In this document: piece after piece, positions 5,921 through 64,000 of the stretch
How the letters are laid out: each line of letters opens with the position of its first letter
Position numbering within the stretch: the first letter of the stretch is position 1
Assembly: GCF_039654945.1 (NCBI RefSeq)
Contig: NW_027361991.1
Span: 186,001-250,000, forward strand
Origin: Dendrobates tinctorius
Lineage: Eukaryota
Length of the DNA stretch: 64,000 nucleotides
Direction: 5' to 3'
The notes under the pieces: model-generated
The model's input: the letters and a program-made list of their open reading frames with translations, nothing else
The model's database searches: none
Told to the model about the DNA's origin: nothing
Program-made: the position numbers and the translations under genes

Positions 5921-6064
5921 ATTTTTTTTTTTTTTTTTAACATTTAACACATTAGCCGGATGATGGGACTACTACTGTCCCATCATTGGCTAATGTGTCA
6001 ATCACTGTCATGGTAGCAGGCATCGCCCGATGGGACTTGTAGTCCCATCGGACGATGCTTGCAC

Positions 6065-19503: not shown

Positions 19504-19684
19504 TCACCGAGGCATGGGTAGGGGTATGGAGGAAAAGGTACCAGGGGCCCAAAGGCGAGTACTTAGGTGACAGGATGAGATGCGGGGTTACTGAACCCAA
19601 AATAAACAAGGTCGAGACCTCCCAAAATCACCTCAAATATATGAATAAACGTGACAAGAAATAATAGAAATAAGTGTAATCTTT

Positions 19685-20228: not shown

Positions 20229-20249
20229 GTACGCAGTGAATGGTCTCTA

Positions 20250-20695
20250 TAAATTAATTAAAAAAAAAAAAACTGTTTGAAAATGGCGCCGGCCGCGTCT
20301 GCCAATAGCAGCTATCGGCGTACCGATAGCTGGTACTCTGCAGGCGCCCGCAGCAGCATCTTGCTAGAGAAAAAAAATTGCCTCTTCCAAGATGGCGCCG
20401 CCGGCGCCTGCACAGTAGCATGTATCGGTTTGCCAATAGATGGCCGGTGCCATCTTAGTGGAGACAATTTTTCTTCTCTATCAAGATGGCGCCTGCGCAG
20501 AAGCAGCTATTAGCGATCAGATAGACGCTACAGCGCAGGTGCCGGCGGCGCCATCTTGGAAGAGGCAGTTTTTTTTCTCTAGCAAGATGGCACCTGCAGC
20601 GCTTACTCTGTGGTAGCTATCGTATTACCGATAGCTGCTAATGTGCAGGAGCGGCCAGCAACATTTTCAAACTGATTTTTTTTAATGAATTTATG
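20250..20695. repeat. Imperfect inverted repeat (MITE interior)
   Basis: CATCTTGCTAGAGAAAAAAAATTGCCTCTTCCAAGATGGCGCCGCCGGC (~20357-20405) pairs with GCCGGCGGCGCCATCTTGGAAGAGGCAGTTTTTTTTCTCTAGCAAGATG (~20541-20589); the outer arms also pair. Confidence 0.85.
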
Positions 20696-21289
20696 GATAC
20701 CCTAAAAAAAATAATTAACTGCACATTACGGATGCAATCATGATGCAGCACAGGCGGCGCCATCGCCTGCCTGCAGAAGGGGATTTTTTTTTAAAAATAT
20801 ATATAATATTCATTATGTAAACTAGGGGGCAGGTCATTGAGGGGTCAGAAGCCATACTGGTGAATACCTAATCAGAGCACTACATGAAGACCCCCCCACA
20901 TGCCACCCCAGAGCACGAGCATAAAATTAAATGAAAACTGAAACTAAAGATTAAACAACCACCACAAGACAGATTTCATCACCGGGTATCATTGTAATCA
21001 GTATAATGGTGCCGACCTGACACTGTCTGTAGGTTACTCAGCACAATTCTTCTGACAGGTTCCCTTTAAGGAATTTTGGTTTTATTTTGCAGGGCCAAGG
21101 ACTGTAACGTAATGAACCTTGCTAAAATGCCTCTAATACACATTTTTTACTCCAGCAGCTAATCTTACAGTCATTGCAGTTAAGAGCGGTATTATAGAAT
21201 AGAATGTATTTTAAATAGCCCTAATAAAAAGGTTCTTCTCCATTTCAGTTTCATTCCATTGCTTCTCATGTTTTCATGTGCAAATGAGA

Positions 21290-21381
21290 ATAAGGATGAG
21301 CCCACTACTTGATCGAGCATCTCAAGTACCATGATCCTCTGTCGAGTAATGAGCAGTGCCGAGCACATTCACCAATCACTA
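21290..21381. mobile_element. Degenerate hAT-type MITE, right end
   Basis: CGAGCA/CGAGTA motifs ending in ATCACTA, complementary to TAGTGAT at 11146. Confidence 0.4.
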
Positions 21382-21943
21382 CCTCCTAGAGTTTCTACAT
21401 AAGATTGAGACCAAGCTAAAGATTTAGACCAAACTCATTAACTCAGACCTACTACATTTTGATTGGCTTAGTTTATCTTTACTTGTGTCTTATGATACTT
21501 CATCATATCTGATCAGTGGTAGTCCGCCATCCAGCACTCTGAATCAGTTGTCAGCAGGTACACCAGAAGTATGCAATTTACATAGCTGGAACAACACAGC
21601 TACACACTTTGTGAAGTAGACATTTTCAAGAATTGCAGCTCAATTTCCATTCATTTTAATAGGAGCTAAGCTACAGTACCTGAGAAAAGCACCTACAAAG
21701 TGTGCACAATAGTGGTGCATTTCCAGCTGTGGCGGGGTGATGTGCTAATAGCTTATCAATAGGTGTGCTAGAAATGAAGCAGCTTATCAATGGATGACTC
21801 CTTTAATAGATAACACAAGCTAATAGTCGCTAAAGAATAACAACCTGAATAAATATAACAGGGAACTTTTAATCTCCTGTAGAATAAAATCTTAGGAAAA
21901 AAGTAATAAATAAAAAATGACCCATACAAAAGCATATAAATGA

Positions 21944-21963
21944 TCTTTTTCTTTCATTGTCAG
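21944..21963 (+). promoter_or_regulatory. 3' splice acceptor (phase 1) of the giant exon
   Basis: Polypyrimidine tract TCTTTTTCTTTCATTGTCAG|AT TCT ACA ACA sits exactly at the switch from AT-rich non-coding DNA to Thr/Ser-rich codons. Confidence 0.85.
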
Positions 21964-24900
21964 ATTCTACAACAACACAAACATATCGAGAAAATACAGG
22001 AAGCACAGCAGGAGATTCTGTGCTACCAGAGCCAACAACATCCTCAGTACTAGAAATTTCAACGGACACAAATCCAGTATCCTACAGAACAACAGACAAG
22101 AATACGACGGTGCCAAAAGTATCTACATCAGAGACATCTACAATAGTTGTATCAAAAACAGAAGGATCGTCACTATCTGTAACATCAATCAAAACATCTA
22201 CAGTATCAGAAAGAACAACTGAAATAATTACAGAGACTTCTATCACAGTAGCTGAAAAAGCGGCAGAAACATCCGCATTGCCAGAAGTATCCACAGAAAC
22301 TTCTCATGTCTCTGACCTAATCACAGAAGTAAAGCATTCAGTATCGGATACTACAATAGAAGCATCTACATTATCCTCTGTACAGTCAAGAAGTTCTCCA
22401 GTGTCTGCTGTACAAACGAAAGAAACATCAGTGGTGCCAGATTCCACAGCGGCAGAGACAAGTCCAGTGGTGGAAGAAAATACAGAAACCTCCTCATTAC
22501 CACAAGTATCCACAGAAACTTCTCCATTGTCTTACTTTACAACAATTACATCAGTGGTGCAAGAATCCACAGCTGTGGAGACTACTCCATTGGTGGAAGC
22601 AACTACAGAAACCTTGTCGTTACCAGAAGTATCCACAAAAACATCTCCATTATCTGCCCAATCTACAGAAGGAACACATTCACTATCTGATACTACATTA
22701 GGAGCATCCACATTAATCTCTGTACAGTCAGGAAGTTCTCCAGTGCCTGCTGTCCAAACGGAAGAAACATCAGTGGTGCCAGATTCCACAGCTGCAGAGA
22801 CAACTACCGTTGTGGAAGAACCTACAGAAACCTCTCCATTACCACACATATCCACAGAAACATCTCCATTGTCTTACTTTACAACGATTACATCAGTGGT
22901 GCCAGAATCCACAGCTGTGGAGACAACTACAGTGATGCAAACAACTACTGAAACCTCCTCACTTCCAGAAGTGTCCACTAGAGCATCTCCAATATCACTA
23001 CCAGAAGGGACATCGGTGGTTTCAGGCTCCACAGCAGCAGAGTCAACTCCAGGAGGAAAAACAACTACAAAAACTGCATCATTACCAGAGGCACCCACAG
23101 AAACCTCTCCAGTGACTGATGTAACAATAACAGGGACATCAGTAGTGCCAGGTTCCATAGACACGGAGACATCTTCAGTGGTTGAAACAACTGCAGAATC
23201 CTCAATGCCAGGAGTATCCACTGAAAGTTCTCCAGTATCTGATCTATCCACAAAAGGAACAAATACAGTACCTAATACTACTATAGGAGATTCACCTTCA
23301 TTACCGTCTGTAACTTCTGTAACTTCTCCTATATCTGAAGTACAAACAGAAGGAACATCAGTGGCACCAGATTCCACAGCTGTGGAGACAACTACAGTGA
23401 TGCAAACAACTACTGAAACCTTCTCACTACCTGAAGTGTCCACAAGAACATCTCCAATATCTGACCAATCTACAGAAAGAACACATTCACAACCAGATAC
23501 CACAATAGAAGCATTTTCAATATCTTCTGTACAGTCAGAGACTTCTATAGTTTCTACATTACTACCAGAAGGAACATCGGTGGTGCCAGGCTCCACAGCA
23601 TTAGAGACAGCTCCAGTAGTAGAAACAAATACAGAAACCTCATCGTTACCAGGAGGACCCACAGAAACTTCGCCAGTGTCTGATATACCAACAAAAGGGA
23701 CATCAGTGGTGCAAGGTTCCACAGACACAGAGACATCTTCAGTGGTTGAAACAACTGCAGAATCCTCATTGCCAGGAGTATCCACTGAAAGTTCTCCAGT
23801 ATCTGATCTGTCCACAAAAGGAACTCATACAGTACCTGATACTACTATAGCAGATTCACCTTCATCACCGTCTGTAACTTCAGTAACTTCTCCTATGTCT
23901 GAAGTACAAACAGAAGGAACATCAGTGGTACCAGATTCCACAGCTGTGGAGACAACTACAGTGATGCAAACAACTACTGAAACCTCCTCACTACCAGAAT
24001 TGTCCACAAGAACATCTCCAATATCTGACCAATCAACAGAAAGAACACATTCACTACCAGATACCACAATAGAAGCATTTTCATTATCTTCTGTACAGTC
24101 AGAGACTTCTATAGTTTCTACATTACTACCAGAAGGAACATCGGTGGTGCCAGGCTCCACAGCATTAGAGACAGCTCCAGTAGTAGAAACAACTACAGAA
24201 AACTCATCGTTACCAGGAGGACCCACAGAAACTTCACCAGTGTCTGATATAACAACAAAAGGGACATCAGTGGTGCAAGGTTCCACAGACATGGAGACAT
24301 CTTCAGTGGTTGAAACAACTGCAGAATCCTCATTGCCAGGAGTATCCACTGAAAGTTCTCCAGTATCTGGTCTGTCCACAAAAGGAACTCATACAGTACC
24401 TGATACTACTATAGCAGATTCACCTTCATCACCGTCTGTAACTTCAGTAACTTCTCCTATGTCTGAAGTACAAACAGAAGGAACATCAGTGGTACCAGAT
24501 TCCACAGCTGTGGAGACAACTACAGTGATGCAAACAACTACTGAAACCTCCTCACTACCAGAAGTGTCCACAAGAACATCTCCAATATCTGACCAATCTA
24601 CAGAAAGAACACATTCACTACCAGATACCACAACAGAAGCATTTTCAATATCTTCTGTACAGTCAGAGATTTCTATAGTTTCTACATTACTAAAAGAAGG
24701 AACATCGGTGGTGCCAGGCTCCACAGCAGTAGAGACATCTCCAGTAGTAGAAACAACTACAGAAACCTCATCGTTAGCAGGAGGACCCACAGAAACTTCT
24801 CCAGTGTCTGATATGACAACAAAAGGGACATCAGTGGTGCAAGGTTCCACAGACATGGAGACATCTTCAGTGGTTGAAACAACTGCAGAATCCTCATTGC

Positions 24901-27900
24901 CAGGAGTATCCACTGAAAGTTCTCCAGTATCTGATCTGTCCACAAAAGGAACTCATACAGTTCCTGATACTACAACAGATTCACCTTCATCACCGTCTGT
25001 AACTTCAGTAACTTCTCCTATGTCTGAAGTACAAACAGAAGGAACATCAGTGGTTCCCGATTCCACAGCTGTGGAGACAACTACAGTGATGCAAACAACT
25101 ACTGAAACCTCCTCACTACCAGAAGTGTCCACAAGAACATCTCCAATATCTGACCAATCTATAGAAAGAACACATTCACTACCAGATACCACAACAGAAG
25201 CATTTTCAATATCTTCTGTACAGTCAGAGACTTCTATAGTTTCTACATTACTAAAAGAAGGAACATCGGTGGTGCCAGGCTCCACAGCAGTAGAGACATC
25301 TCCAGTAGTAGAAACAACTACAGAAACCTCATCGTTAGCAGGAGGACCCACAGAAACTTCTCCAGTGTCTGATATGACAACAAAAGGGACATCAGTGGTG
25401 CAAGGTTCCACAGACACGGGGACATCTTCAGTGGTTGAAACAACTGCAGACTCCTCATTGCCAGGAGTATCCACTGAAAGTTCTCCAGTATCTGATCTGT
25501 CCACAACAGGAACTCATACAGTTCCTGATACTACTATAACAGATACACCTTCATCACCGTCTGTAACTTCAGTAACTTCTCCTATGTCTGAAGTACAAAC
25601 AGAAGGAACATCAGTGGTACCAGATTCCACAGCTGTGGAGACAACTACAGTGATGCAAACAACTACTGAAACCTCCTCACTACTAGAAGTGTCCACAAGA
25701 ACATCTCCAATATCTGACCAATCTACAGAAAGAACACATTCACTACCAGATACCACAATAGAAGCATTTTCGTTATCTTCTGTACAGTCAGAGACTTCTA
25801 CAGTTTCTACATTACTGCCAGAAGGAACATCGGTGGTGCCAGGCTCCACAGCAGTAGAGACAGATCCAGTAGTAGAAACAACTACAGAAACCTCATCGTT
25901 ACCAGGAGGACCCACAGAAACTTCACCAGTGTCTGATATACCAACAAAAGGGACATCAGTGGTGCAAGGTTCCACAGACACGGAGACATCTTCAGTGGTT
26001 GAAACAACTGCAGAATCCTCATTGCCAGGAGTATCCACTGAAAGTTCTCCAGTATCTGATATGTCCACAAAAGGAACTCATACAGTACCTGATACTACTA
26101 TAGCAGATTCACCTTCATCACCGTCTGTAACTTCAGTAACTTCTCCTATGTCTGAAGTACAAACAGAAGGAACATCAGTGGTACCAGATTCCACAGCTGT
26201 GGAGACAACTACAGTGATGCAAACAACTACTGAAACCTACTCACTACCAGAAGTGTCCATAAGAACATCTCCAATATCTGACCAGTCTACAGAAAGAACA
26301 CATTCACTACCAGATACCACAATAGAAGCATTTTTGTTATCTTCTGTTCAGTCAGAGACTTCTACAGTTTCTACATTACTGCCAGAAGGAACATCGGTGG
26401 TGCCAAGCTCCACAGCAGTGGAGACAGCTCCAGTTGTAGAAACAACTACAGAAACCTCATCGTTACCAGGAGAATTCACAGAAACTTCTCCAGTGTCTGG
26501 TATAACAACAAAAGGGACATCAGTGGTGCAAGGTTCCACAGACACAGAGACATCTTCAGTGGTTGAAACAACTGCAGAATCCTCATTGCCAGGAGTATCC
26601 ACTGAAAGTTCTCCAGTATCTGATCTGTCCACAAAAGGAACTCATACAGTTCCTGATACTACTATAACAGATTCACCTTCATCACCGTCTGTAACTTCAG
26701 TAACTTCTCCTATGTCTGAAGTACAAACAGAAGGAACATCAGTGGTACCAGATTCCACAGCTGTGGAGACAACTACAGTGATGCAAACAACTACTGAAAC
26801 CTACTCACTACCAGAAGTGTCCACAAGAACATCTCCAATATCTGACCAATCAACAGAAAGAACACAATCACTACCAGATACCACAATAGAAGCATTTTCA
26901 TTATCTTCTGTACAGTCAGAGACTTCTATAGTTTCTACATTACTACCAGAAGGAACATCGGTGGTGCCAGGCTCCACAGTATTAGAGACAGCTCCAGTAG
27001 TAGAAACAACTACAGAAACCTCATCGTTACCAGGAGGACCCACAGAAACTTCACCAGTGTCTGATATAACAACAAAAGGGACATCAGTGGTGCAAGGTTC
27101 CACAGACATGGAGACATCTTCAGTGGTTGAAACAACTGCAGAATCCTCATTGCCAGGAGTATCCACTGAAAGTTCTCCAGTATCTGGTCTGTCCACAAAA
27201 GGAACTCATACAGTACCTGATACTACTATAGCAGATTCACCTTCATCGCCGTCTGTAACTTCAGTAACTTCTCCTATGTCTGAAGTACAAACAGAAGGAA
27301 CATCAGTGGTACCAGATTCCACAGCTGTGAAGACAACTACAGTGATGCAAACAACTACTGAAACCTCCTCACTACCAGAAGTGTCCACAAGAACATCTCC
27401 AATATCTGACCAATCAACAGAAAGAACACATTCACTACCAGATACCACAATAGAAGCATTTTCTTTATCTTCTGTACAGTCAGAGACTTCTATAGTTTCT
27501 ACATTACTACCAGAAGGAACATCGGTGGTGCCAGGCTCCACAGCATTAGAGACAGCTCCAGTAGTAGAAACAACTACAGAAACCTCATCGTTACCAGGAG
27601 GACCCACAGAAACTTCACCAGTGTCTGATATAACAACAAAAGGGACATCAGTGGTGCAAGGTTCCACAGACATGGAGACATCTTCAGTGGTTGAAACAAC
27701 TGCAGAATCCTCATTGCCAGGAGTATCCACTGAAAGTTCTCCAGTATCTGTTCTGTCCACAAAAGGAACTCATACAGTACCTGATACTACTATAGCAGAT
27801 TCACCTTCATCACCGTCTGTAACTTCAGTAACTTCTCCTATGTCTGAAGTACTAACAGAAGGAACATCAGTGGTACCAGATTCCACAGCTGTGGAGACAA

Positions 27901-30900
27901 CTACAGTGATGCAAACAACTACTGAAACCTCCTCACTACCAGAAGTGTCCGCAAGAACATCTCCAATATCTGACCAATCTATAGAAAGAACACATTCACT
28001 ACCAGATACCACAACACAAGCATTTTCAATATCTTCTGCACAGTCAGAGACTTCTATAGTTTCCACATTACTAAAAGAAGGAACATCGGTGGTGCCAGGC
28101 TCCACAGCAGTAGAGACATCTCCAGTAGTAGAAACAACTACAGAAACCTCATCGTTAGCAGGAGGACCCACAGAAACTTCTCCAGTGTCTGATATGACAA
28201 CAAAAGGGACATCAGTGGTGCAAGGTTCCACAGACACGGGGACATCTTCAGTGGTTGAAACAACTGCAGAATCCTCATTGCCAGGAGTATCCACTGAAAG
28301 TTCTCCAGTATCTGATCTGTCCACAACAGGAACTCATACAGTTCCTGATACTACTATAACAGATACACCTTCATCACCGTCTGTAACTTCAGTAACTTCT
28401 CCTATGTCTGAAGTACAAACAGAAGGAACATCAGTGGTACCAGATTCCACAGCTGTGGAGACAACTACAGTGATGCAAACAACTACTGAAACCTCCTCAC
28501 TACTAGAAGTGTCCACAAGAACATCTCCAATATCTGACCAATCTACAGAAAGAACACATTCACTACCAGATACCACAATAGAAGCATTTTCATTATCTTC
28601 TGTACAGTCAGAGACTTCTACAGTTTCTACATTACTGCCAGAAGGAACATCGGTGGTGCCAGGCTCCACAGCAGTAGAGACAGATCCAGTAGTAGAAACA
28701 ACTACAGAAACCTCATCGTTACCAGGAGGACCCACAGAAACTTCACCAGTGTCTGATATACCAACAAAAGGGACATCAGTGGTGCTAGGTTCCACAGACA
28801 CGGAGACATCTTCAGTGGTTGAAACAACTGCAGAATCCTCATTGCCAGGAGTATCCACTGAAAGTTCTCCAGTATCTGATCTGTCCACAAAAGGAACTCA
28901 TACAGTACCTGATACTACTATAGCAGATTCACCTTCATCACCGTCTGTAACTTCAGTAACTTCTCCTATGTCTGAAGTACAAACAGAAGGAACATCAGTG
29001 GTACCAGATTCCACAGCTGTGGAGACAACTACAGTGATGCAAACAACTACTGAAACCTACTCACTACCAGAAGTGTCCATAAGAACATCTCCAATATCTG
29101 ACCAGTCTACAGAAAGAACACATTCACTACCAGATACCACAATAGAAGCATTTTCGTTATCTTCTGTTCAGTCAGAGACTTCTACAGTTTCTACATTACT
29201 GCCAGAAGGAACATCGGTGGTGCCAAGCTCCACAGCAGTGGAGACAGCTCCAGTTGTAGAAACAACTACAGAAACCTCATCGTTACCAGGAGAATTCACA
29301 GAAACTTCTCCAGTGTCTGGTATAACAACAAAAGGGACATCAGTGGTGCAAGGTTCCACAGACACAGAGACATCTTCAGTGGTTGAAACAACTGCAGAAT
29401 CCTCATTGCCAGGAGTATCCACTGAAAGTTCTCCAGTATCTGATCTGTCCACAAAAGGAACTCATACAGTTCCTGATACTACTATAACAGATTCACCTTC
29501 ATCACCGTCTGTAACTTCAGTAACTTCTCCTATGTCTGAAGTACAAACAGAAGGAACATCAGTGGTACCAGATTCCACAGCTGTGGAGACAACTACAGTG
29601 ATGCAAACAACTACTGAAACCTACTCACTACCAGAAGTGTCCACAAGAACATCTCCAATATCTGACCAATCAACAGAAAGAACACAATCACTACCAGATA
29701 CCACAATAGAAGCATTTTCATTATCTTCTGTACAGTCAGAGACTTCTATAGTTTCTACATTACTACCAGAAGGAACATCGGTGGTGCCAGGCTCCACAGT
29801 ATTAGAGACAGCTCCAGTAGTAGAAACAACTACAGAAACCTCATCGTTACCAGGAGGACCCACAGAAACTTCACCAGTGTCTGATATAACAACAAAAGGG
29901 ACATCAGTGGTGCAAGGTTCCACAGACATGGAGACATCTTCAGTGGTTGAAACAACTGCAGAATCCTCATTGCCAGGAGTATCCACTGAAAGTTCTCCAG
30001 TATCTGGTCTGTCCACAAAAGGAACTCATACAGTACCTGATACTACTATAGCAGATTCACCTTCATCGCCGTCTGTAACTTCAGTAACTTCTCCTATGTC
30101 TGAAGTACAAACAGAAGGAACATCAGTGGTACCAGATTCCACAGCTGTGAAGACAACTACAGTGATGCAAACAACTACTGAAACCTCCTCACTACCAGAA
30201 GTGTCCACAAGAACATCTCCAATATCTGACCAATCAACAGAAAGAACACATTCACTACCAGATACCACAATAGAAGCATTTTCTTTATCTTCTGTACAGT
30301 CAGAGACTTCTATAGTTTCTACATTACTACCAGAAGGAACATCGGTGGTGCCAGGCTCCACAGCATTAGAGACAGCTCCAGTAGTAGAAACAACTACAGA
30401 AACCTCATCGTTACCAGGAGGACCCACAGAAACTTCACCAGTGTCTGATATAACAACAAAAGGGACATCAGTGGTGCAAGGTTCCACAGACATGGAGACA
30501 TCTTCAGTGGTTGAAACAACTGCAGAATCCTCATTGCCAGGAGTATCCACTGAAAGTTCTCCAGTATCTGTTCTGTCCACAAAAGGAACTCATACAGTAC
30601 CTGATACTACTATAGCAGATTCACCTTCATCACCGTCTGTAACTTCAGTAACTTCTCCTATGTCTGAAGTACTAACAGAAGGAACATCAGTGGTACCAGA
30701 TTCCACAGCTGTGGAGACAACTACAGTGATGCAAACAACTACTGAAACCTCCTCACTACCAGAAGTGTCCGCAAGAACATCTCCAATATCTGACCAATAT
30801 ATAGAAAGAACACATTCACTACCAGATACCACAACACAAGCATTTTCAATATCTTCTGCACAGTCAGAGACTTCTATAGTTTCCACATTACTAAAAGAAG

Positions 30901-33900
30901 GAACATCGGTGGTGCCAGGCTCCACAGCAGTAGAGACATCTCCAGTAGTAGAAACAACTACAGAAACCTCATCGTTAGCAGGAGGACCCACAGAAACTTC
31001 TCCAGTGTCTGATATGACAACAAAAGGGACATCAGTGGTGCAAGGTTCCACAGACACGGGGACATCTTCAGTGGTTGAAACAACTGCAGAATCCTCATTG
31101 CCAGGAGTATCCACTGAAAGTTCTCCAGTATCTGATCTGTCCACAACAGGAACTCATACAGTTCCTGATACTACTATAACAGATACACCTTCATCACCGT
31201 CTGTAACTTCAGTAACTTCTCCTATGTCTGAAGTACAAACAGAAGGAACATCAGTGGTACCAGATTCCACAGCTGTGGAGACAACTACAGTGATGCAAAC
31301 AACTACTGAAACCTCCTCACTACTAGAAGTGTCCACAAGAACATCTCCAATATCTGACCAATCTACAGAAAGAACACATTCACTACCAGATACCACAATA
31401 GAAGCATTTTCATTATCTTCTGTACAGTCAGAGACTTCTACAGTTTCTACATTACTGCCAGAAGGAACATCGGTGGTGCCAGGCTCCACAGCAGTAGAGA
31501 CAGATCCAGTAGTAGAAACAACTACAGAAACCTCATCGTTACCAGGAGGACCCACAGAAACTTCACCAGTGTCTGATATACCAACAAAAGGGACATCAGT
31601 GGTGCTAGGTTCCACAGACACGGAGACATCTTCAGTGGTTGAAACAACTGCAGAATCCTCATTGCCAGGAGTATCCACTGAAAGTTCTCCAGTATCTGAT
31701 CTGTCCACAAAAGGAACTCATACAGTACCTGATACTACTATAGCAGATTCACCTTCATCACCGTCTGTAACTTCAGTAACTTCTCCTATGTCTGAAGTAC
31801 AAACAGAAGGAACATCAGTGGTACCAGATTCCACAGCTGTGGAGACAACTACAGTGATGCAAACAACTACTGAAACCTACTCACTACCAGAAGTGTCCAT
31901 AAGAACATCTCCAATATCTGACCAGTCTACAGAAAGAACACATTCACTACCAGATACCACAATAGAAGCATTTTCGTTATCTTCTGTTCAGTCAGAGACT
32001 TCTACAGTTTCTACATTACTGCCAGAAGGAACATCGGTGGTGCCAAGCTCCACAGCAGTGGAGACAGCTCCAGTTGTAGAAACAACTACAGAAACCTCAT
32101 CGTTACCAGGAGAATTCACAGAAACTTCTCCAGTGTCTGGTATAACAACAAAAGGGACATCAGTGGTGCAAGGTTCCACAGACACAGAGACATCTTCAGT
32201 GGTTGAAACAACTGCAGAATCCTCATTGCCAGGAGTATCCACTGAAAGTTCTCCAGTATCTGATCTGTCCACAAAAGGAACTCATACAGTTCCTGATACT
32301 ACTATAACAGATTCACCTTCATCACCGTCTGTAACTTCAGTAACTTCTCCTATGTCTGAAGTACAAACAGAAGGAACATCAGTGGTACCAGATTCCACAG
32401 CTGTGGAGACAACTACAGTGATGCAAACAACTACTGAAACCTACTCACTACCAGAAGTGTCCACAAGAACATCTCCAATATCTGACCAATCAACAGAAAG
32501 AACACAATCACTACCAGATACCACAATAGAAGCATTTTCATTATCTTCTGTACAGTCAGAGACTTCTATAGTTTCTACATTACTACCAGAAGGAACATCG
32601 GTGGTGCCAGGCTCCACAGTATTAGAGACAGCTCCAGTAGTAGAAACAACTACAGAAACCTCATCGTTACCAGGAGGACCCACAGAAACTTCACCAGTGT
32701 CTGATATAACAACAAAAGGGACATCAGTGGTGCAAGGTTCCACAGACATGGAGACATCTTCAGTGGTTGAAACAACTGCAGAATCCTCATTGCCAGGAGT
32801 ATCCACTGAAAGTTCTCCAGTATCTGGTCTGTCCACAAAAGGAACTCATACAGTACCTGATACTACTATAGCAGATTCACCTTCATCGCCGTCTGTAACT
32901 TCAGTAACTTCTCCTATGTCTGAAGTACAAACAGAAGGAACATCAGTGGTACCAGATTCCACAGCTGTGAAGACAACTACAGTGATGCAAACAACTACTG
33001 AAACCTCCTCACTACCAGAAGTGTCCACAAGAACATCTCCAATATCTGACCAATCTACAGAAAGAACACATTCACTACCAGATACCACAACAGAAGCATT
33101 TTCAATATCTTCTGTACAGTCAGAGACTTCTATAGTTTCTACATTACTAAAAGAAGGAACATCGGTGGTGCCAGGCTCCACAGCAGTAGAGACATCTCCA
33201 GTAGTAGAAACAACTACAGAAACCTCATCATTAGCAGGAGGACCCACAGAAACTTCTCCAGTGTCTGATATGACAACAAAAGGGACATCAGTGGTGCAAG
33301 GTTCCACAGACACGGGGACATCTTCAGTGGTTGAAACAACTGCAGAATCCTCATTGCCAGGAGTATCCACTGAAAGTTCTCCAGTATCTGATCTGTCCAC
33401 AAAAGGAACTCATACAGTTCCTGATACTACTATAACAGATTCATCTTCATCACCGTCTGTAACTTCAGTAACTTCTCCTATGTCTGAAGTACAAACAGAA
33501 GGAACATCAGTGGTTCCCGATTCCACAGCTGTGGAGACAACTACAGTGATGCAAACAACTACTGAAACCTCCTCACTACTAGAAGTGTCCACAAGAACAT
33601 CTCCAATATCTGACCAATCTACAGAAAGAACACATTCACTACCCGATACCACAATAGAAGCATTTTCGTTATCTTCTGTACAGTCAGCGACTTCTACAGT
33701 TTCTACATTACTACCAGAAGGAACATCGGTGGTGCCAGGCTCCACAGCAGTAGAGACAGCTCCAGTAGTAGAAACAACTACAGAAACCTCATCATTACCA
33801 GGAGTACCCACAGAAACTTCACCAGTGTCTGATATACCAACAAAAGGGACATCAGTGGTGCAAGGTTCCACAGACACGGAGACATCTTTAGTGGTTGAAA

Positions 33901-51900: not shown

Positions 51901-54900
51901 CAGTGGTGCAAGGTTCCACAGACACGGAGACATCTTCAGTGGTTGAAACAACTGCAGAATCCTCATCGCCAGGAGTATCCACTGAAAGTTCTCTAGTATC
52001 TGATCTGTCCACAAAAGGAACTCATACAGATCCCGATACTACTATAGCAGATTCACCTTCATCACCGTCTGTAACTTCAGTAAGTTCTCCTATGTCTGAA
52101 TTACAAACAGAAGGAACATCAGTGGTACCAGATTCCAAAACTGTGGAGACAACTACAGTGATGCAAACAGCTACTGAAACCTCCTCACTACCAGACGTGT
52201 CCACAAGAACATCTCCAATATCTGACCAATCTACAGAAAGAACACATTCACTACCAGATACCACAATAGAAGCATTATCATTATCTTCTGTACAGTCAGA
52301 GACTTCCATAGTTTCTACATTACTAACAGAAGGAACATCGGTGGTGCCAGGCTCCACAGCAGTAGAGACAGCTCCAGTAGTAGAAACAACTACAGAAACC
52401 TCATCGTTACCAGGAGGACCCACAGAAACTTCTTCAGTGTCTGATATAACAACAAAAGGGACATCAGTGGTGCAAGGTTCCACAGACACGGAGACATCTT
52501 CAGTGGTTGAAACAACTGCAGAATCCTCATTGCCAGGAGTATTCACTGAAAGTTCTCCAGTATCTGATCTGTCCACAAAAGGAACTCATAGAGTACCTGA
52601 TACTACTATAGCAGATTCACCTGCATCACCGTCTGTAACTTCAGTAACTTCTCCTATGTCTGAAGTACAAACAGAAGGAACATCAGTGGTACCAGATTCC
52701 ACAGCTGTGGAGACAACTACAGTAATGCAAACAACTACTGAAACCTCCTCACTACCAGAAGTGTCCACAAGAACATCTCCAATATCTGTCCAATCTACAG
52801 AAAGAACACATTCACTACCAGATACCACAACAGAAGCATTTTCAATATCTTCTGTACAGTCAGAGTCTTCTATAGTTTCTACATTACTACCAGAAGGAAC
52901 ATCGGTGGTGCCAGGCTCCACAGCAGTAGAGACAGCTCCAGTAGTAGAAACAACTACAGAAACCTCATCGTTAGCAGGAGGACCCACAGAAACTTCTCCA
53001 GTGTCTGATATAACAACAAAAGGGACATCAGTGGTGCAAGGTTCCACAGACACGGAGACATCTTCAGTGGTTGAAACAACTGCAGAATCCTCATTGCCAG
53101 GAGTATCCACTGAAAGTTCTCCAGTATCTGATCTGTCCACAAAAGGAACTCATACAGATCCTGATACTACTATAGCAGATTCACCTTCATCACCGTCTGT
53201 AACTTCAGTAAGTTCTCCTATGTCTGAACTACAATCAGAAGGAACATCAGTAGTATCAGATTCCAAAACTGTGGAGACAACTACAGTGATGCAAACAGCT
53301 ACTGAAACCTCCTCACTACCAGACGTGTCCACAAGAACATCTCCAATATCTGACCAATCTACAGAAAGAACACATTCACTAACAGATACCACAATAGAAG
53401 CATTATCATTATCTTCTGTACAGTCAGAGACTTCTATAGTTTCTACATTACTAGCAGAAGGAACATCGGAGGTGCCAGGCTCCACAGCAGTAGAGACAGC
53501 TCCAGTAGTAGAAACAACTACAGAAACCTCATCGTTACCAGGAGGACCCACAGAAACTTCTCCAGTGTCTGATATAACAACAAAAGGGACATCAGTGGTG
53601 CAAGGTTCCACAGACACGGAGACATCTTCAGTGGTTGAAACAACTGCAGAATCCTCATTGCCAGGAGTATCCACTGAAAGTTCTCCAGTATCTGATCTGT
53701 CCACAAAAGGAACTCATACAGTTCCTGATACTACTATAACAGATTCACCTTCATCACCGTCTGTAACTTCAGTAACTTCTCCTATGTCTGAAGTACAAAC
53801 AGAAGGAACATCAGTGGTACCAGATTCCACAGCTGTGGAGACAACTACAGTGATGCAAACAACTACTGAAACCTCCTCACTACTAGAAGTGTCCACAAGA
53901 ACATCTCCAATATCTGACCAATCTACAGAAAGAACACATTGTCTACCAGATACCACAATAGAAGCATTTTCATTATCTTCTGTACAGTCAGAGACTTCTA
54001 CAGTTTCTACATTACTACCAGAAGGAACATCGGTGGTGCCAGGCTCCACAGCAGTAGAGACAGCTCCATTAGTAGAAACAACTACAGAAACCTCATCGTT
54101 ACCAGGAGAACTCACAGAAACTTCTCCAGTGTCTGGTATAACAACAAAAGGGACATCAGTGGTGCAAGGTTCCACAGACACGGAGACATCTTCAGTGGTT
54201 GAAACAACTGCAGAATCCTCATCGCCAGGAGTATCCACTGAAAGTTCTCTAGTATCTGATCTGTCCACAAAAGGAACTCATACAGATCCCGATACTACTA
54301 TAGCAGATTCACCTTCATCACCGTCTGTAACTTCAGTAAGTTCTCCTATGTCTGAATTACAAACAGAAGGAACATCAGTGGTACCAGATTCCAAAACTGT
54401 GGAGACAACTACAGTGATGCAAACAGCTACTGAAACCTCCTCACTACCAGACGTGTCCACAAGAACATCTCCAATATCTGACCAATCTACAGAAAGAACA
54501 CATTCACTACCAGATACCACAATAGAAGCATTATCATTATCTTCTGTACAGTCAGAGACTTCCATAGTTTCTACATTACTAACAGAAGGAACATCGGTGG
54601 TGCCAGGCTCCACAGCAGTAGAGACAGCTCCAGTAGTAGAAACAACTACAGAAACCTCATCGTTACCAGGAGGACCCACAGAAACTTCTTCAGTGTCTGA
54701 TATAACAACAAAAGGGACATCAGTGGTGCAAGATTCCACAGACACGGAGACATCTTCAGTGGTTGAAACAACTGCAGAATCCTCATTGCCAGGAGTATCC
54801 ACTGAAAGTTCTCCAGTATCTGATCTGTCCACAAAAGGAACTCATACAGTTCCTGATACTACTATAACAGATTCTCCTTCATCACCGTCTGTAACTTCAG

Positions 54901-57900
54901 TAACTTCTCCTATGTCTGAAGTACAAACAGAAGGAACATCAGTGGTACCAGATTCCACAGCTGTGGAGACAACTACAGTGATGCAAACAACTACTGAAAC
55001 CTACTCACTACCAGAAGTGTCCACAAGAACATCTCCAATATCTGACCAATCAACAGAAAGAACACAATCACTACCAGATACCACAATAGAAGCATTTTCA
55101 TTATCTTCTGTACAGTCGGAGACTTCTATATTTTCTACATTACTACCAGAAGGAACATCGGTGGTGCCAGGCTCCACAGTATTAGAGACAGCTCCAGTAG
55201 TAGAAACAACTACAGAAACCTCATCGTTACCAGGAGGACCCACAGAAACTTCACCAGTGTCTGATATAACAACAAAAGGGACATCAGTGGTGCAAGGTTC
55301 CACAGACATGGAGACATCTTCAGTGGTTGAAACAACTGCAGAATCCTCATTGCCAGGAGTATCCACTGAAAGTTCTCCAGTGTCTGGTCTGTCCACAAAA
55401 GTAACTCATACAGTACCTGATACTACTATAGCAGATTCACCTTCATCGCCGTCTGTAAATTCACTAACTTCTCCTATGTCTGAAGTACAAACAGAAGGAA
55501 CATCAGTGGTACCAGATTCCACAGCTGTGAAGACAACTACAGTGATGCAAACAACTACTGAAACCTCCTCACTACCAGAAGTGTCCACAAGAACATCTCC
55601 AATATCTGACCAATCTACAGAAAGAACACATTCACTTCCAGATACCACAACAGAAGCATTTTCAATATCTTCTGTACAGTCAGAGACTTCTATAGTTTCT
55701 ACATTACTAAAAGAAGGAACATCGGTGGTGCCAGGCTCCACAGCAGTAGAGACATCTCCAGTAGTAGAAACAACTACAGAAACCTCATCGTTAGCAGGAG
55801 GACCCACAGAAACTTCTCCAGTGTCTGATATTACAACAAAAGTGACATCAGTGTTGCAAGGTTCCACAGACACGGGGACATCTTCAGTGGTTGAAACAAC
55901 TGCAGAATCCTCATTGCCAGGAGTATCCACTGAAAGTTCTCCGGTATCTGATCTGTCCACAAAAGGAACTAATACAGTTCCTGATACTACTATAACAGAT
56001 TCATCTTCATCACCGTCTGTAACTTCAGTAACTTCTCCTATGTCTGAAGTACAAACAGAAGGAACATCAGTGGTTCCCGATTCCACAGCTGTGGAGACAA
56101 CTACAGTGATGCAAACAACTACTGAAACCTCCTCACTACTAGAAGTGTCCACAAAAACATCTCCAATATCTGACCAATCTACAGAAAGAACACATTCACT
56201 ACCAGATACCACAATAGAAGCATTTTCGTTATCTTCTGTACAGTCAGCGACTTCTACAGTTTCTACATTACTACCAGAAGGAACATCGGTGGTGCCAGGC
56301 TCCACAGCAGTAGAGACAGCTCCAGTAGTAGAAACAACTACAGAAACCTCATCATTATCAGGAGTACCCACAGAAACTTCACCAGTGTCTGATATACCAA
56401 CAAAAGTGACATCAGTGGAGCAAGGTTCCACAGACACGGAGACATCTTCAGTGGTTGAAACAACTGCAGAAACCTCATTGCCAGGAGTATCCACTGAAAG
56501 TTCTCCAGTATCTGATCTGTCCACAAAAGGAACTCATACAGTACCTGATACTACAATAGCAGATTCACCTTCATCACCGTCTGTAACTTCAGTAAGTTCT
56601 CCTATGTCTGAACTACAATCAGAAGGAACATCAGTGGTATCAGATTCCAAAACTGTGGAGACAACTACAGTGATGCAAACAGCTACTGAAACCTCCTCAC
56701 TACCAGACGTGTCCACAAGAACATCTCCAATATCTGACCAATCTACAGAAAGAACACATTCACTAACAGATACCACAATAGAAGCATTATCATTATCTTC
56801 TGTACAGTCAGAGACTTCTATAATTTATACATTACTAGCAGAAGGAACATCGGTGGTGCCAGGCTCCACAGCAGTAGAGACAGCTCCAGTAGTAGAAACA
56901 ACTACAGAAACCTCATCGTTACCAGGAGGACCCACAGAAACTTCTCCAGTGTCTGATATAACAACAAAAGGGACATCAGTGGTGCAAGGTTCCACAGACA
57001 CGGAGACAACTTCAGTGGTTGAAACAACTGCAGAATCCTCATTGCCAGGAGTATCCACTGAAAGTTCTCCAGTATCTGATCTGTCCACAAAAGGAACTCA
57101 TACAGTTCCTGATACTACTATAACAGATTCACCTTCATCACCGTCTGTAACTTCAGTAACTTCTCCTATGTCTGAAGTACAAACAGAAGGAACATCAGTG
57201 GTACCAGATTCCACAGCTGTGGAGACAACTACAGTGATGCAAACAACTACTGAAACCTCCTCACTACTAGAAGTGTCCACAAGAACATCTCCAATATCTG
57301 ACCAATCTACAGAAAGAACACATTCTCTACCAGATAACACAATAGAAGCATTTTCATTATCTTCTGTACAGTCAGAGACTTCTACAGTTTCTACATTACT
57401 ACCAGAAGGAACATCGGTGGTGCCAGGCTCCACAGCAGTGGAGACAGCTCCAGTAGTAGAAACAACTACAGAAACCTCATCGTTACCAGGAGGACCCACA
57501 GAAACTTCACCAGTGTCTGAAATAACAACAAAAGGGACATCAGTGGTGCAAGGTTCCACAGACATGGAGACATCTTCAGTGGTTGAAACAACTGCAGAAT
57601 CCTCATTGCCAGGAGTATCCACTGAAAGTTCTCCAGTATCTGTTCTGTCCACAAAAGGAACTCATACAGTACCTGATACTACTATAGCAGATTCACCTTC
57701 ATCACCGTCTGTAACTTCAGTAACTTCTCCTATGTCTGAAGTACTAACAGAAGGAACATCAGTGGTACCAGATTCCACAGCTGTGGAGACAACTACAGTG
57801 ATGCAAACAACTACTGAAACCTCCTCACTACCAGAAGTGTCCACAAGAACATCTCCAATATCTGACCAATCTACAGAAAGAACACATTCACTACCAGATA

Positions 57901-60900
57901 CCACAACAGAAGCATTTTCTATATCTTCTGCACAGTCAGAGACTTCTATTGTTTCTACATTACTAAAAGAAGGAACATCGGTGGTGCCAGGCTCCACAGC
58001 AGTAGAGACATCTCCAGTAGTAGAAACAACTACAGAAACCTCATCGTTAGCAGGAGGACCCACAGAAACTTCTCCAGTGTCTGATATTTCAACAAAAGTG
58101 ACATCAGTGGTGCAAGGTTCCACAGACACGGGGACATCTTCAGTGGTTGAAACAACTGCAGAATCCTCATTGCCAGGAGTATCCACTGAAAGTTCTCCGG
58201 TATCTGATCTGTCCACAAAAGGAACTAATACAGTTCCTGATACTACTATAACAGATTCATCTTCATCACCGTCTGTAACTTCAGTAACTTCTCCTATGTC
58301 TGAAGTACAAACAGAAGGAACATCAGTGGTTCCCGATTCCACAGCTGTGGAGACAACTACAGTGATGCAAACAACTACTGAAACCTCCTCACTACTAGAA
58401 GTGTCCACAAAAACATCTCCAATATCTGACCAATCTACAGAAAGAACACATTCACTACCAGATACCACAATAGAAGCATTTTCGTTATCTTCTGTACAGT
58501 CAGCGACTTCTACAGTTTCTACATTACTACCAGAAGGAACATCGGTGGTGCCAGGCTCCACAGCAGTAGAGACAGCTCCAGTAGTAGAAACAACTACAGA
58601 AACCTCATCATTATCAGGAGTACCCACAGAAACTTCACCAGTGTCTGATATACCAACAAAAGTGACATCAGTGGTGCAAGGTTCCACAGACACGGAGACA
58701 TCTTCAGTGGTTGAAACAACTGCAGAAACCTCATTGCCAGGAGTATCCACTGAAAGTTCTCCAGTATCTGATCTGTCCACAAAAGGAACTCATACAGTAC
58801 CTGATACTACAATAGCAGATTCACCTTCATCACCGTCTGTAACTTCAGTAAGTTCTCCTATGTCTGAACTACAATCAGAAGGAACATCAGTGGTATCAGA
58901 TTCCAAAACTGTGGAGACAACTACAGTGATGCAAACAGCTACTGAAACCTCCTCACTACCAGACGTGTCCACAAGAACATCTCCAATATCTGACCAATCT
59001 ACAGAAAGAACACATTCACTAACAGATACCACAATAGAAGCATTATCATTATCTTCTGTACAGTCAGAGACTTCTATAATTTATACATTACTAGCAGAAG
59101 GAACATCGGTGGTGCCAGGCTCCACAGCAGTAGAGACAGCTCCAGTAGTAGAAACAACTACAGAAACCTCATCGTTACCAGGAGGACCCACAGAAACTTC
59201 TCCAGTGTCTGATATAACAACAAAAGGGACATCAGTGGTGCAAGGTTCCACAGACACGGAGACAACTTCAGTGGTTGAAACAACTGCAGAATCCTCATTG
59301 CCAGGAGTATCCACTGAAAGTTCTCCAGTATCTGATCTGTCCACAAAAGGAACTCATACAGTTCCTGATACTACTATAACAGATTCACCTTCATCACCGT
59401 CTGTAACTTCAGTAACTTCTCCTATGTCTGAAGTACAAACAGAAGGAACATCAGTGGTACCAGATTCCACAGCTGTGGAGACAACTACAGTGATGCAAAC
59501 AACTACTGAAACCTCCTCACTACTAGAAGTGTCCACAAGAACATCTCCAATATCTGACCAATCTACAGAAAGAACACATTCTCTACCAGATACCACAATA
59601 GAAGCATTTTCATTATCTTCTGTACAGTCAGAGACTTCTACAGTTTCTACATTACTACCAGAAGGAACATCGGTGGTGCCAGGCTCCACAGCAGTAGAGA
59701 CAGCTCCAGTAGTAGAAACAACTACAGAAACCTCATCGTTACCAGGAGGACCCACAGAAACTTCACCAGTGTCTGATATAACAACAAAAGGGACATCAGT
59801 GGTGCAAGGTTCCACAGACATGGAGACATCTTCAGTGGTTGAAACAACTGCAGAATCCTCATTGCCAGGAGTATCCACTGAAAGTTCTCCAGTATCTGTT
59901 CTGTCCACAAAAGGAACTCATACAGTACCTGATACTACTATAGCAGATTCACCTTCATCACCGTCTGTAACTTCAGTAACTTCTCCTATGTCTGAAGTAC
60001 TAACAGAAGGAACATCAGTGGTACCAGATTCCACAGCTGTGGAGACAACTACAGTGATGCAAACAACTACTGAAACCTCCTCACTACCAGAAGTGTCCAC
60101 AAGAACATCTCCAATATCTGACCAATCTACAGAAAGAACACATTCACTACCAGATACCACAACAGAAGCATTTTCTATATCTTCTGCACAGTCAGAGACT
60201 TCTATTGTTTCTACATTACTAAAAGAAGGAACATCGGTGGTGCCAGGCTCCACAGCAGTAGAGACATCTCCAGTAGTAGAAACAACTACAGAAACCTCAT
60301 CGTTAGCAGGAGGACCCACAGAAACTTCTCCAGTGTCTGATATGACAACAAATGGGACATCAGTGGTGCAAGGTTCCACAGACACGGGGACATCTTCAGT
60401 GGTTGAAACAACTGCAGAATCCTCATTGCCAGGAGTATCCACTGAAAGTTCTCCAGTATCTGATCTGTCCACAAAAGGAACTCATACAGTTCCTGATACT
60501 ACTATAACAGATTCACCTTCATCACCGTCTGTAACTTCAGTAACTTCTCCTATGTCTGAAGTACAAACAGAAGGAACATCAGTGGTTCCCGATTCCACAG
60601 CTGTGGAGACAACTACAGTGATGCAAACAACTACTGAAACCTCCTCACTACTAGAAGTGTCTACAAGAACATCTCCAATATCTGACCAATCTACAGAAAG
60701 AACACATTCACTACCAGATACCACAAGAGAAGCATTTTCGTTATCTTCTGTACAGTCAGAGACTTCTACAGTTTCTACATTACTACCAGAAGGAACATCG
60801 GTGGTGCCAGGCTCCACAGCAGTAGAGACAGCTCCAGTAGTAGAAACAACTACAGAAACCTCATCGTTACCAGGAGGACCCACAGAAACTTCACCAGTGT

Positions 60901-63900
60901 CTGATATACCAACAAAAGGGACATCAGTGGTGCAAGGTTCCACAGACACGGAGACATCTTCAGTGGTTGAAACAACTGCAGACTCCTCATTGCCAGGAGT
61001 ATCCACTGAAAGTTCTCCAGTATCTGATCTGTCCACAAAAGGAACTCATACAGTTCCTGATACTACTATAACAGATTCACCTTCATCACCGTCTGTAACT
61101 TCAGTAACTTCTCCTATGTCTGAAGTACAAACAGAAGGAACATCAGTGGTACCAGATTCCACAGCTGTGGAGACAACTACAGTGATGCAAACAACTACTG
61201 AAACCTCCTCACTACTAGAAGTGTCCACAAGAACATCTCCAATATCTGACCAATCTACAGAAAGAACACATTCTCTACCAGATACCACAATAGAAGCATT
61301 TTCATTATCTTCTGTACAGTCAGAGACTTCTACAGTTTCTACATTACTACCAGAAGGAACATCGGTGGTGCCAGGCTCCACAGCAGTAGAGACAGCTCCA
61401 TTAGTAGAAACAACTACAGAAACCTCATCGTTACCAGGAGAACTCACAGAAACTTCTCCAGTGTCTGGTATAACAACAAAAGGGACATCAGTGGTGCAAG
61501 GTTCCACAGACACGGAGACATCTTCAGTGGTTGAAACAACTGCAGAATCCTCATCGCCAGGAGTATCCACTGAAAGTTCTCTAGTATCTGATCTGTCCAC
61601 AAAAGGAACTCATACAGATCCCGATACTACTATAGCAGATTCACCGTCATCACCGTCTGTAACTTCAGTAAGTTCTCCTATGTCTGAATTACAAACAGAA
61701 GGAACATCAGTGGTACCAGATTCCAAAACTGTGGAGACAACTACAGTGATGCAAACAGCTACTGAAACCTCCTCACTACCAGACGTGTCCACAAGAACAT
61801 CTCCAATATCTGACCAATCTACAGAAAGAACACATTCACTACCAGATACCACAATAGAAGCATTATCATTATCTTCTGTACAGTCAGAGACTTCCATAGT
61901 TTCTACATTACTAACAGAAGGAACATCGGTGGTGCCAGGCTCCACAGCAGTAGAGACAGCTCCAGTAGTAGAAACAACTACAGAAACCTCATCGTTACCA
62001 GGAGGACCCACAGAAACTTCTCCAGTGTCTGATATAACAACAAAAGGGACATCAGTGGTGCAAGATTCCACAGACACGGAGACATCTTCAGTGGTTGAAA
62101 CAACTGCAGAATCCTCATTGCCAGGAGTATCCACTGAAAGTTCTCCAGTATCTGATCTGTCCACAAATGGAACTCACACAGTTCCTGATACTACTATAAC
62201 AGATTCACCTTCATCACCGTCTGTAACTTCAGTAAGTTCTCCTATGTCTGAAGTACTAACAGAAGGAACATCAGTGGTACCAGATTCCACAGCTGTGGAG
62301 ACAACTACAGTGATGCAAACAACTACTGAAACCTCCTCACTACCAGAAGTGTCCACAAGAACATCTCCAATATCTGACCAATCTACAGAAAGAAAACATT
62401 CACTACCAGATACCACAACAGAAGCATTTTCTATATCTTCTGCACAGTCAGAGACTTCTATAGTTTCTACATTACTAAAAGAAGGAACATCGGTGGTGCC
62501 AGGTTCCACAGCAGTAGAGACATCTCCAGTAGTAGAAACAACTACAGAAACCTCATCGTTAGCAGGAGGACCCACAGAAACTTCTCCAGTGTCTGATATG
62601 ACAACAAAAGGGACATCAGTGGTGCAAGGTTCCACAGACACGGGGACATCTTCAGTGGTTGAAACAACTGCAGAATCCTCATTGCCAGGAGTATCCACTG
62701 AAAGTTCTCCAGTATCTGATCTGTCCACAAAAAGAACTCATACAGTTCCTGATACTACTATAACAGATTCACCTTCATCACCGTCTGTAACTTCAGTAAC
62801 TTCTCCTATGTCTGAAGTACAAACAGAAGGAACATCAGTGGTTCCCGATTCCACAGCTGTGGAGACAACTACAGTGATGCAAACAACTACTGAAACCTCC
62901 TCACTACTAGAAGTGTCTACAAGAACATCTCCAATATCTGACCAATCTACAGAAAGAACACATTCACTACCAGATACCACAAGAGAAGCATTTTCGTTAT
63001 CTTCTGTACAGTCAGCGACTTCTACAGTTTCTACATTACTACCAGAAGGAACATCGGTGGTGCCAGGCTCCACAGCAGTAGAGACAGCTCCAGTAGTAGA
63101 AACAACTACAGAAACCTCATCGTTACCAGGAGGACCCACAGAAACTTCACCAGTGTCTGATATACCAACAAAAGGGACATCAGTGGTGCAAGGTTCCACA
63201 GACACGGAGACATCTTCAGTGGTTGAAACAACTGCAGACTCCTCATTGCCAGGAGTATCCACTGAAAGTTCTCCAGTATCTGATCTGTCCACAACAGGAA
63301 CTCATACAGTTCCTGATACTACTATAGCAGATTCACCTTCATCACCATCTGTAACTTCAGTAACTTCTCCTATGTCTGAAGTACAAACAGAAGGAACATC
63401 AGTGGTACCAGATTCCACAGCTGTGGAGACAACTACAGTGATGCAAACAACTACTGAAACCTACTCACTACCAGAAGTGTCCATAAGAACATCTCCAATA
63501 TCTGACCAGTCTACAGAAAGAACACATTCACTACCAGATACCACAATAGAAGCATTTTCATTATCTTCTGTACAGTCAGAGACTTCTATAGTTTCTACAT
63601 TACTACCAGAAGGAACATCGGTGGTGCCAGGCTCCACAGCAGAAGAGACAGCTCCAGTAGTAGAAACAACTACAGAAACCTCAACATTACCTGGGGGACC
63701 CACAGAATCTTCTCCAGTGTCTGATATAACAACAAAAGGGACATCAGTGGTTCAAGGTTCCACAGACACGGAGACATCTTCAGTGGTTGAAACAACTGCA
63801 GAATCCTCATTGCCAGGATTATCCACTGAATGTTCTCCAGTATCTGATCTGTCCACAAAAGGAACTCATACATTTCCTGATACGACTATAGCAGATTCAC

Positions 63901-64000
63901 CTTCATCACCGTCTGTAACTTCAGTTAATTCTCCTATGTCTGAAGTAGAAACAGAAGAAACATCAGTGGTACCAGATTCCACAACTGTGGAGACAACTAC
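21964..64000 (+). CDS. Giant mucin-type PTS-domain exon (partial: at least 14,011 codons, open at the window end)
   Basis: Frame +3, first full codon at 21966: STTTQTYRENTGSTAGDSVLPEPTTSSVLEIS... followed by 188-aa repeats. The frame has in-frame ATGs in every unit, yet the ORF track lists no closed ORF in it, which implies no stop before 64000. Hand count of the consensus unit: 43 T, 39 S, 16 P, 25 D/E, 4 K/R. Confidence 0.92.
23261..64000 (+). repeat. Coding tandem array of 564-bp units: about 72 complete copies plus a partial copy
   Basis: The landmark GGAACTCATACA recurs at ~23820, 24384, 24948, 25509 and then every 564 bp to ~63861. One unit is 561 bp (in-frame 3-bp deletion at ~24970). 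Confidence 0.97.

Follow-up and report, generated by a model that had tools for sequence, protein, structure and literature searches.

The exon and its boundaries

The DNA analysed (hereafter the window) comprises 64,000 nt of contig NW_027361991.1 (186,001-250,000) from the Dendrobates tinctorius assembly GCF_039654945.1. It contains no N and positions are numbered within it. The forward strand carries the 3′ part of an intron of at least 21.9 kb (1-21963) rich in transposable elements, then a coding exon. This exon starts at 21964, its preceding phase-1 intron being 22 kb or more in length, and extends past the window end. We take it to be the central tandem-repeat exon, with a high content of proline, threonine and serine (PTS), of a frog mucin gene that is very large and expressed. 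The mucin is most likely membrane-bound and SEA-type, of the MUC3/MUC12/MUC17 kind; we place the probability of this reading as a whole at about 0.85.

Forward frame 3 is free of stop codons from 21921 to the window end at 64000, a distance of 42,080 bp, when approximately 758 stops would be expected by chance in 14,012 codons of this base composition. Over 21964-64000 the other two forward frames contain 775 and 576 stops and the three reverse frames 99, 667 and 1,479. An earlier reading made from the letters only (the sequence-only reading) had described a good splice acceptor followed by one open forward frame, and both are present. It also described the exon as invisible to the open reading frame (ORF) track; the ORF tool indeed reports antisense ORFs only in the array region, of 184-372 residues, and does not list the forward frame because ORFs that run off the window end are omitted. 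Those antisense ORFs are what could suggest a non-coding satellite, or a product coded on the opposite strand, with the forward frame open by chance. This explanation can be regarded as already refuted. The expected 758 stops are absent, even the best antisense frame carries 99, about one per repeat unit, and there is in addition a deficit of stop-creating variants specific to one frame, a contig spliced at the acceptor and a protein homologue, all described below. Antisense coding itself was rejected on the reverse-frame counts, which come to roughly one stop or more in each unit.

At the acceptor the sequence is ctttttctttcattgtcag/ATTC; its AG occupies 21962-21963 and the exon's first base is 21964. 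A pyrimidine tract and AG lie immediately 5′ of that base (ctttttctttcattgtcag/ATTCTACAAC), and the feature as a whole, with its phase-1 junction, occupies 21944-21963 of the forward strand. Three observations define it: the sequence itself, the break in a contig of run X6 and the alignment of a Ranitomeya protein from the first full codon. The split codon is x/AT. The X6 contig overlaps the genome by an additional two nucleotides, AG, which indicates that the upstream exon ends in AG and that the codon is G/AT, encoding Asp in phase 1; an Asp precedes the alignment in the frog homologue and fits this codon. The proposal of a PTS exon following a phase-1 intron is thereby borne out.

The intron assignment draws on tblastn searches, on family matches of the ORFs and on zero depth in RNA-like runs over 21492-21879. 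The window upstream of the exon holds transposable elements only (ORF family matches RVT_1, DDE_Tnp_4, SCAN and HTH, a helix-turn-helix). Searching the upstream 22 kb by tblastn with the Ranitomeya mucin-17-like proteins detected none of the homologue's exons, and nothing convincing before 21951. Weak matches at 18843-19232 on the reverse strand were rejected as upstream exons, representing chance Ser/Thr-rich similarity within a transposon.

Organization of the tandem array

The exon begins with a diverged 5′ part of about 1 kb (21964-23004, forward strand) that contains 342- and 123-bp sub-repeats and is about 73% like the array consensus; a homologue is detectable for this part alone. This 5′ part is followed by a tandem array (23005-64000, forward strand) of approximately 73 in-frame units of 564 bp, or 188 residues, without a stop, that runs off the window end. 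By autocorrelation the period is 564 bp, neighbouring units are 94.7% identical and secondary peaks lie at 6,768, 2,256 and 2,820 bp. An anchor search shows perfect unit register from 23569, with 71 full units to 63609 and then one partial unit; the extra unit at 23005 matches the consensus to 93%. Every spacing is 564 bp bar one of 561 bp. Pairwise alignment of units 2 and 3 places the sole length change of the array, an in-frame 3-bp deletion, between 24973 and 24974 of the forward strand, in the unit that starts at 24697.

The 188-residue consensus unit consists of three sub-repeats of 42, 73 and 73 residues, each beginning GTSVV and sharing the core ETSSLP..TETSPVSD, with a 31-residue extension in both of the longer ones. 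These sub-repeats are older than the unit itself.

The register and the single deletion correspond to what the sequence-only reading had stated for about 72 units, but the units are not independent. Among the 71 full units from 23569, 54 are distinct and these group into about 32 types; a large part of the array arose by recent duplication of blocks. At 25258-32589 (forward strand, as for the other blocks) a 5-unit block of 2,820 bp is repeated with 6 differences, and the second copy is followed by three further units identical to 28078-29769. Three copies of a 12-unit, 6,768-bp higher-order block occupy 32590-52893, differ from one another at 16-28 positions and are 99.6-99.8% identical. At 55714-60225 a 4-unit block of 2,256 bp occurs twice, with 6 differences between the copies. 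The diagnostic differences between blocks mean that they are separate copies. The order of unit types, from which these duplications were recognized, is the pattern left by recent unequal crossing-over, and such exchanges of 4-, 5- and 12-unit blocks both grow and homogenise the array.

Selection on the reading frame

The 71 full units provide 167 distinct single-base variants relative to the consensus, which were compared with expectations derived from the observed mutation spectrum. The variants are evenly spread over the three codon positions (51/63/53). Synonymous changes number 44 (44.6 expected) and non-synonymous changes 122 (114.7 expected), whilst stop-creating changes number 0 against 7.8 expected (P=3.6e-4). 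When the same variants are read in the out-of-phase forward frames as a control, stops are found at 6 against 5.6 expected and at 20 against 14.6 expected. Against these 167 types of substitution there is a single indel, of 3 bp. Losses of Ser/Thr (33) are close to expectation (34.5), and gains number 16 against 8.4 expected. One nominal stop variant, TCA to TGA at consensus column 483, was rejected; the codon reads TGT (Cys) in all four carrier units.

The exon is coding and its frame is kept open by selection. What is guarded is the frame, the length in multiples of three and, roughly, the composition, not the exact sequence; replacements are tolerated, with a ratio of non-synonymous to synonymous change (dN/dS) of about 1. 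This is the pattern expected of a glycosylated PTS domain. The deficit of stop variants, together with the RNA-like contigs considered next, supports the earlier proposal of a functional mucin domain.

Transcription

Two runs from the same organism, X5 and X6, were compared as contigs, not raw reads. With 48-67 Mb of contigs, the longest reaching 15 kb, they are too small to have assembled single-copy DNA of a frog genome, and so behave as RNA. Their depth is zero on the unique intron sequence 21492-21879. On the unique part of the exon there are exact contigs at 22097-22254, 22266-22582, 22421-22554 and 22678-22918, and over the repeat the depth is 92-215.

A check for junction reads at 21964 had been proposed with the sequence-only reading, and one X6 contig leaves the genome exactly at the acceptor. 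In this contig (record 28, 240 nt) letters 96-240 match 21962-22106 exactly. The first 95 letters are not found on 18000-21961; they lie elsewhere and the contig is therefore spliced at the acceptor. Over nearly a whole unit (23293-23800) the RNA-like contigs run collinear with the genome, and hence no intron lies within a unit. The ratio of repeat to unique depth in X5 and X6, 29-37, is close to the value of about 41 in the DNA run X1, which indicates that the transcript includes most of the array. In run X10, which comes from a related organism and is labelled as probably RNA, contigs are about 95% alike at a depth of 190-350. The small indels seen there cancel (+1/-1; +3/-1-1-1) and, since they sum to zero, the frame is kept in the related species too. 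Transcription of the exon is very likely.

Array size and integrity of the assembly

Depth had also been suggested as a check on over-expansion of the array by the assembler. In X1, exact contigs cover 21270-22791 at a depth of 7.6-8.1, and a collapsed contig of 563 nt closes the 564-nt cycle without a gap; its depth is 323, giving a repeat-to-unique ratio of about 41. For the 71.7 units in the window, 31-mers on the majority path of the array have a mean multiplicity of 34.3-34.9. Together these values give about 85 units and the assembly is not over-expanded. The array probably continues about 7 kb beyond the window, with an uncertainty of roughly 20% on the estimated number of units, and the depth suggests an exon of roughly 50 kb in all.

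We also considered whether the array is in part an artefact or is no longer translated, the 6.8-kb blocks having been copied too often by the assembler or polishing having removed breaks present in the true allele. The near identity of the three 12-unit blocks (99.6-99.8%), the exact duplication of one 1.7-kb stretch and a unique depth of only about 8x in the DNA run would be compatible with this. It is nevertheless highly improbable: the 12-unit blocks carry 16-28 diagnostic differences each and hence are not identical copies, the 85 units predicted by k-mer depth at least equal the number assembled in the window, the collapsed contig closes its cycle without gaps, and the lack of stops among real variants is specific to one frame.

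Composition of the encoded protein

The translation within the window is of 14,011 residues, of which Ser and Thr account for 6,108 (43.6%). The sequence-only reading of an acidic, Ser/Thr-rich domain is correct, the counted figure replacing its estimate of about 5,900. The most abundant residues are Thr (22.8%), Ser (20.7%), Val (11.9%), Glu (9.0%) and Pro (7.9%). Asp and Glu together number 1,845, Lys and Arg 348. Phe and Tyr together make up 0.7%, N-glycosylation sequons number 9, and Cys is found at 8 scattered positions (0.06%). The exon thus encodes a long, low-complexity Ser/Thr/Pro-rich domain poor in Cys and aromatic residues, with its tandem repeats contained in a single large in-frame exon, as is characteristic of mucins. 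No CysD-like cluster of Cys occurs anywhere in the 14,011 residues, and an ORF and Pfam family scan revealed no VWD-like ORF within 22 kb upstream. A Pfam scan of the exon start and three units gave nothing meaningful, the one match, to FKRP_N, being below its cutoff.

The few Cys residues have an evident origin. At consensus column 483 (units 25, 37, 49 and 53, for example) Ser TCA has become Cys TGT, a double change within one codon that block duplication then spread; the 8 Cys are explained by variants of this sort. A mucin domain with free thiols could form occasional disulphide cross-links.

Homologue and family assignment

A HMMER search with the first 1,200 residues against 1.84 billion representative proteins gave one relative, CAJ0965809.1 from Ranitomeya imitator (497 residues, E 1.8e-21). 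This clusters with XP_069623434.1, a 1,510-residue R. imitator protein named mucin-17-like. In BLASTP the alignment begins at exon residue 1, STTTQTYRENTGSTAGDSVLPEPTTSSVLEISTDTNPVSY matching (D)STMKQTSPESTGGTEGESLRTEPTVSSLTEIPTDTNAVSY with 47% identity, and includes the Asp of the split codon; the exon start is 47-51% identical to the two R. imitator entries. The core motif ETSSLPxVSxETSPV is common to both species. A word-indexed search for proteins of 495-1,575 residues returned the same Ranitomeya protein. At 1,100-3,500 residues there were compositional matches to aggrecan only, and at 5,500-17,500 residues nothing was found. At the lengths searched, public protein collections hold no predicted protein of the D. 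tinctorius gene.

XP_069623434.1 has a SEA domain (Pfam E 4.9e-10). By eye, its N-terminus (MTRVVILLLVLPLLTVLG) reads as a signal peptide, and its C-terminal part presents EGF-like modules flanking the SEA domain, a GSIIV autocleavage-type motif, a transmembrane helix and a cytoplasmic tail. Signal peptide, PTS domain, EGF-SEA-EGF, transmembrane helix and cytoplasmic tail make up the architecture of the MUC3/12/13/17 group. A search of solved structures with the C-terminus of the homologue gave only a weak SEA-like match, to ADGRF1. The R. imitator gene spans 104 kb. Its PTS region is about 350 residues of 20-residue units (ETSSLPKVSIETSPVVDTT), as opposed to 188-residue units and at least 14,011 residues in D. 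tinctorius, and may be collapsed in the gene model. The signal peptide, basic repeats and EGF-SEA-EGF-transmembrane end of the homologue have no counterpart inside the window.

Between the signal peptide and the PTS region, within residues 1-800, XP_069623434.1 carries about eight basic/acidic repeats of approximately 100 residues (...KKSRMKRSIEMLEYFEQE...). They have no Pfam match and we know of no counterpart in human MUC3/12/17.

The sequence-only reading held that the mucin family could not be seen. The terminal domains are indeed outside the window, but the sole homologue is a frog membrane mucin of the SEA type. A different class would be an expressed PTS exon from a secreted mucin that lacks the SEA and transmembrane anchor, or from a lineage-specific 'orphan', with the Ranitomeya match due to a shared repeat motif. 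For this speak the position of the terminal domains, homology confined to PTS sequence, the unusual Ranitomeya N-terminus with its eight or so basic repeats that human MUC3/12/17 lack, and the automatic origin of the name mucin-17-like. We consider it unlikely. The exon's opening 60-100 residues do not form a simple repeat and align collinearly from the boundary (EPTTSSVLEISTDTNPVSY with EPTVSSLTEIPTDTNAVSY), as expected of orthologous exons. No CysD-type Cys-rich interruption is present in the 14,011 residues, and the 22 kb upstream hold no VWD-like ORF.

The reading as an expressed mucin exon, most likely of a SEA-type membrane mucin, nonetheless has several points weighing against it. The N- and C-terminal exons lie outside the window, and the signal peptide, SEA, EGF and transmembrane parts are known from the homologue alone. 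Homology to a family member is limited to the PTS-exon start of an automatically named frog protein, at 47-51% identity in a low-complexity region. The mucin product is predicted from the sequence. X5 and X6 have no recorded library type and their contigs are strandless, such that forward-strand transcription is deduced from the acceptor and the frame; a single contig shows the junction, its 95 upstream letters could not be read, and collapsed contigs would not reveal in-register splicing that joins distant units. Finally, the DNA run may be from the same individual as the assembly.

Comparison with known mucins

Human MUC3A, MUC3B, MUC12 and MUC17 share with the frog gene a single giant PTS exon, placed after short N-terminal exons and of comparable size, and their repeat number is highly variable. 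They differ in having short units, that of MUC3 being 17 residues (PMC9578598), and no sequence similarity to the frog exon is detectable. The genes flanking the MUC3 cluster include Ache, Trim56 and Serpine1, and seven SEA-type membrane mucin genes are reported in Xenopus tropicalis (PMC9578598).

The gel-forming mucins MUC2, MUC5AC, MUC5B, MUC6 and MUC19 also have a large central tandem-repeat PTS exon. In these proteins the PTS region is flanked by VWD/C8/TIL and CK domains and is often interrupted by CysD. The frog exon, in contrast, has no Cys-rich interruption in 14,011 residues and no VWD ORF upstream within the window. A weak likeness to the chondroitin-sulphate attachment region of bird aggrecan (30-33% identity, E 5e-9 to 5e-4) reflects acidic Ser/Thr/Glu-rich repeats. 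It is compositional only and not collinear with the exon start, and the window is without link, lectin and sushi domains.

With respect to size, the sequence-only reading took the largest human coding exons to be those of MUC16 (approximately 21.7 kb) and TTN (approximately 17.1 kb), about half the length found here. That comparison predates long-read assemblies. In T2T-CHM13 (telomere-to-telomere) exon 2 of MUC3B is 39,267 bp (13,089 residues) and the PTS exon of MUC12 is 32,428 bp (PMC9578598). Across 296 human assemblies made from long reads, the length of MUC12 proteins varies between 4,677 and 23,080 residues, and MUC12 is said to hold the largest human exon (PMC13345508). The frog exon is among the largest coding exons known, in the top class with the largest human mucin exons and not twice the record. 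It is probably the largest described in an amphibian. If about 85 units are present, giving an exon of about 50 kb and a PTS domain of about 16,500 residues, then among the single coding exons and mucin domains documented outside mammals these might be the longest; the exon might also exceed every exon of the human reference assembly (MUC3B, 39.3 kb), the array having grown within frogs from a motif of about 20 residues into the 188-residue unit. We put this forward tentatively, with the odds rather against it.

Possible function and implications

From what is known of mucin biology, the roughly 6,100 Ser/Thr residues would be densely O-glycosylated in the Golgi, and the resulting chain would be a stiff, extended, hydrated and negatively charged bottle-brush several micrometres long. 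Some indication of scale comes from MUC17. One report gives S4492 as a site in its cytoplasmic tail, so the protein is about 4,500 residues (PMC6705488), and another has the MUC17 glycocalyx reaching about 1 micrometre (PMC12172626). In proportion, 14,000-16,500 residues could span several micrometres. Were the C-terminus like that of the Ranitomeya protein, the brush would be anchored on the apical membrane by a self-cleaved SEA module and a transmembrane helix, would form a glycocalyx barrier and could be shed at the SEA cleavage site.

The extreme sizes of mucin exons seen in human telomere-to-telomere assemblies thus occur in amphibians also. The array is a clean example of growth by block duplication and of selection that acts on frame and composition but not on sequence; our understanding of how mucins are built is unchanged by it. 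A micrometre-scale acidic component of glycocalyx or mucus bears on the barrier of frog skin and gut and on contact with pathogens. If the exon is indeed about 50 kb, the gene offers a natural case for asking how cells make, export and translate an mRNA longer than 50 kb.

Other features upstream of the exon

At 288-1931 (forward strand) there is an intact ORF of 547 residues with a reverse-transcriptase match (RVT_1, E 1.9e-6). Its Cys-rich C-terminus, with a YIGET-type motif at the end, resembles the GIY-YIG nuclease of Penelope-like retroelements; the element may be a young and possibly active copy. Mirrored satellite arrays at 2802-6454 have long ORFs in all frames on both strands, with His/Tyr/Thr-rich and Pro/Ala/Gly-rich translations, and agree with the 3.65-kb foldback hAT element of the sequence-only reading. 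A Harbinger/PIF-type transposase fragment is found at 7345-7917 on the forward strand (DDE_Tnp_4, E 8e-14). Inside the intron, at 15245-16291 on the reverse strand, are broken pieces of a Tc1/mariner-like transposase with paired-box/HTH matches and a C-terminal DDE-like piece.

At 17639-19503 (forward strand) an ORF of 258 residues with a SCAN domain (E 7.5e-12, unrelated to SEA) is followed by one of 234 residues without a family match. Vertebrate SCAN domains derive from Gmr30-type Gypsy elements, and the segment looks like the gag end of such an element. Nearest to the exon, about 700 bp upstream of the acceptor, is a very high-copy repeat at 20716-21297. The DNA k-mer depth there is 20,000-53,000 compared with about 8 for unique sequence, which corresponds to thousands of copies. 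The repeat is also at high depth in all three RNA-like runs, indicating a transcribed element similar to a short interspersed element (SINE) or a miniature inverted-repeat transposable element (MITE).

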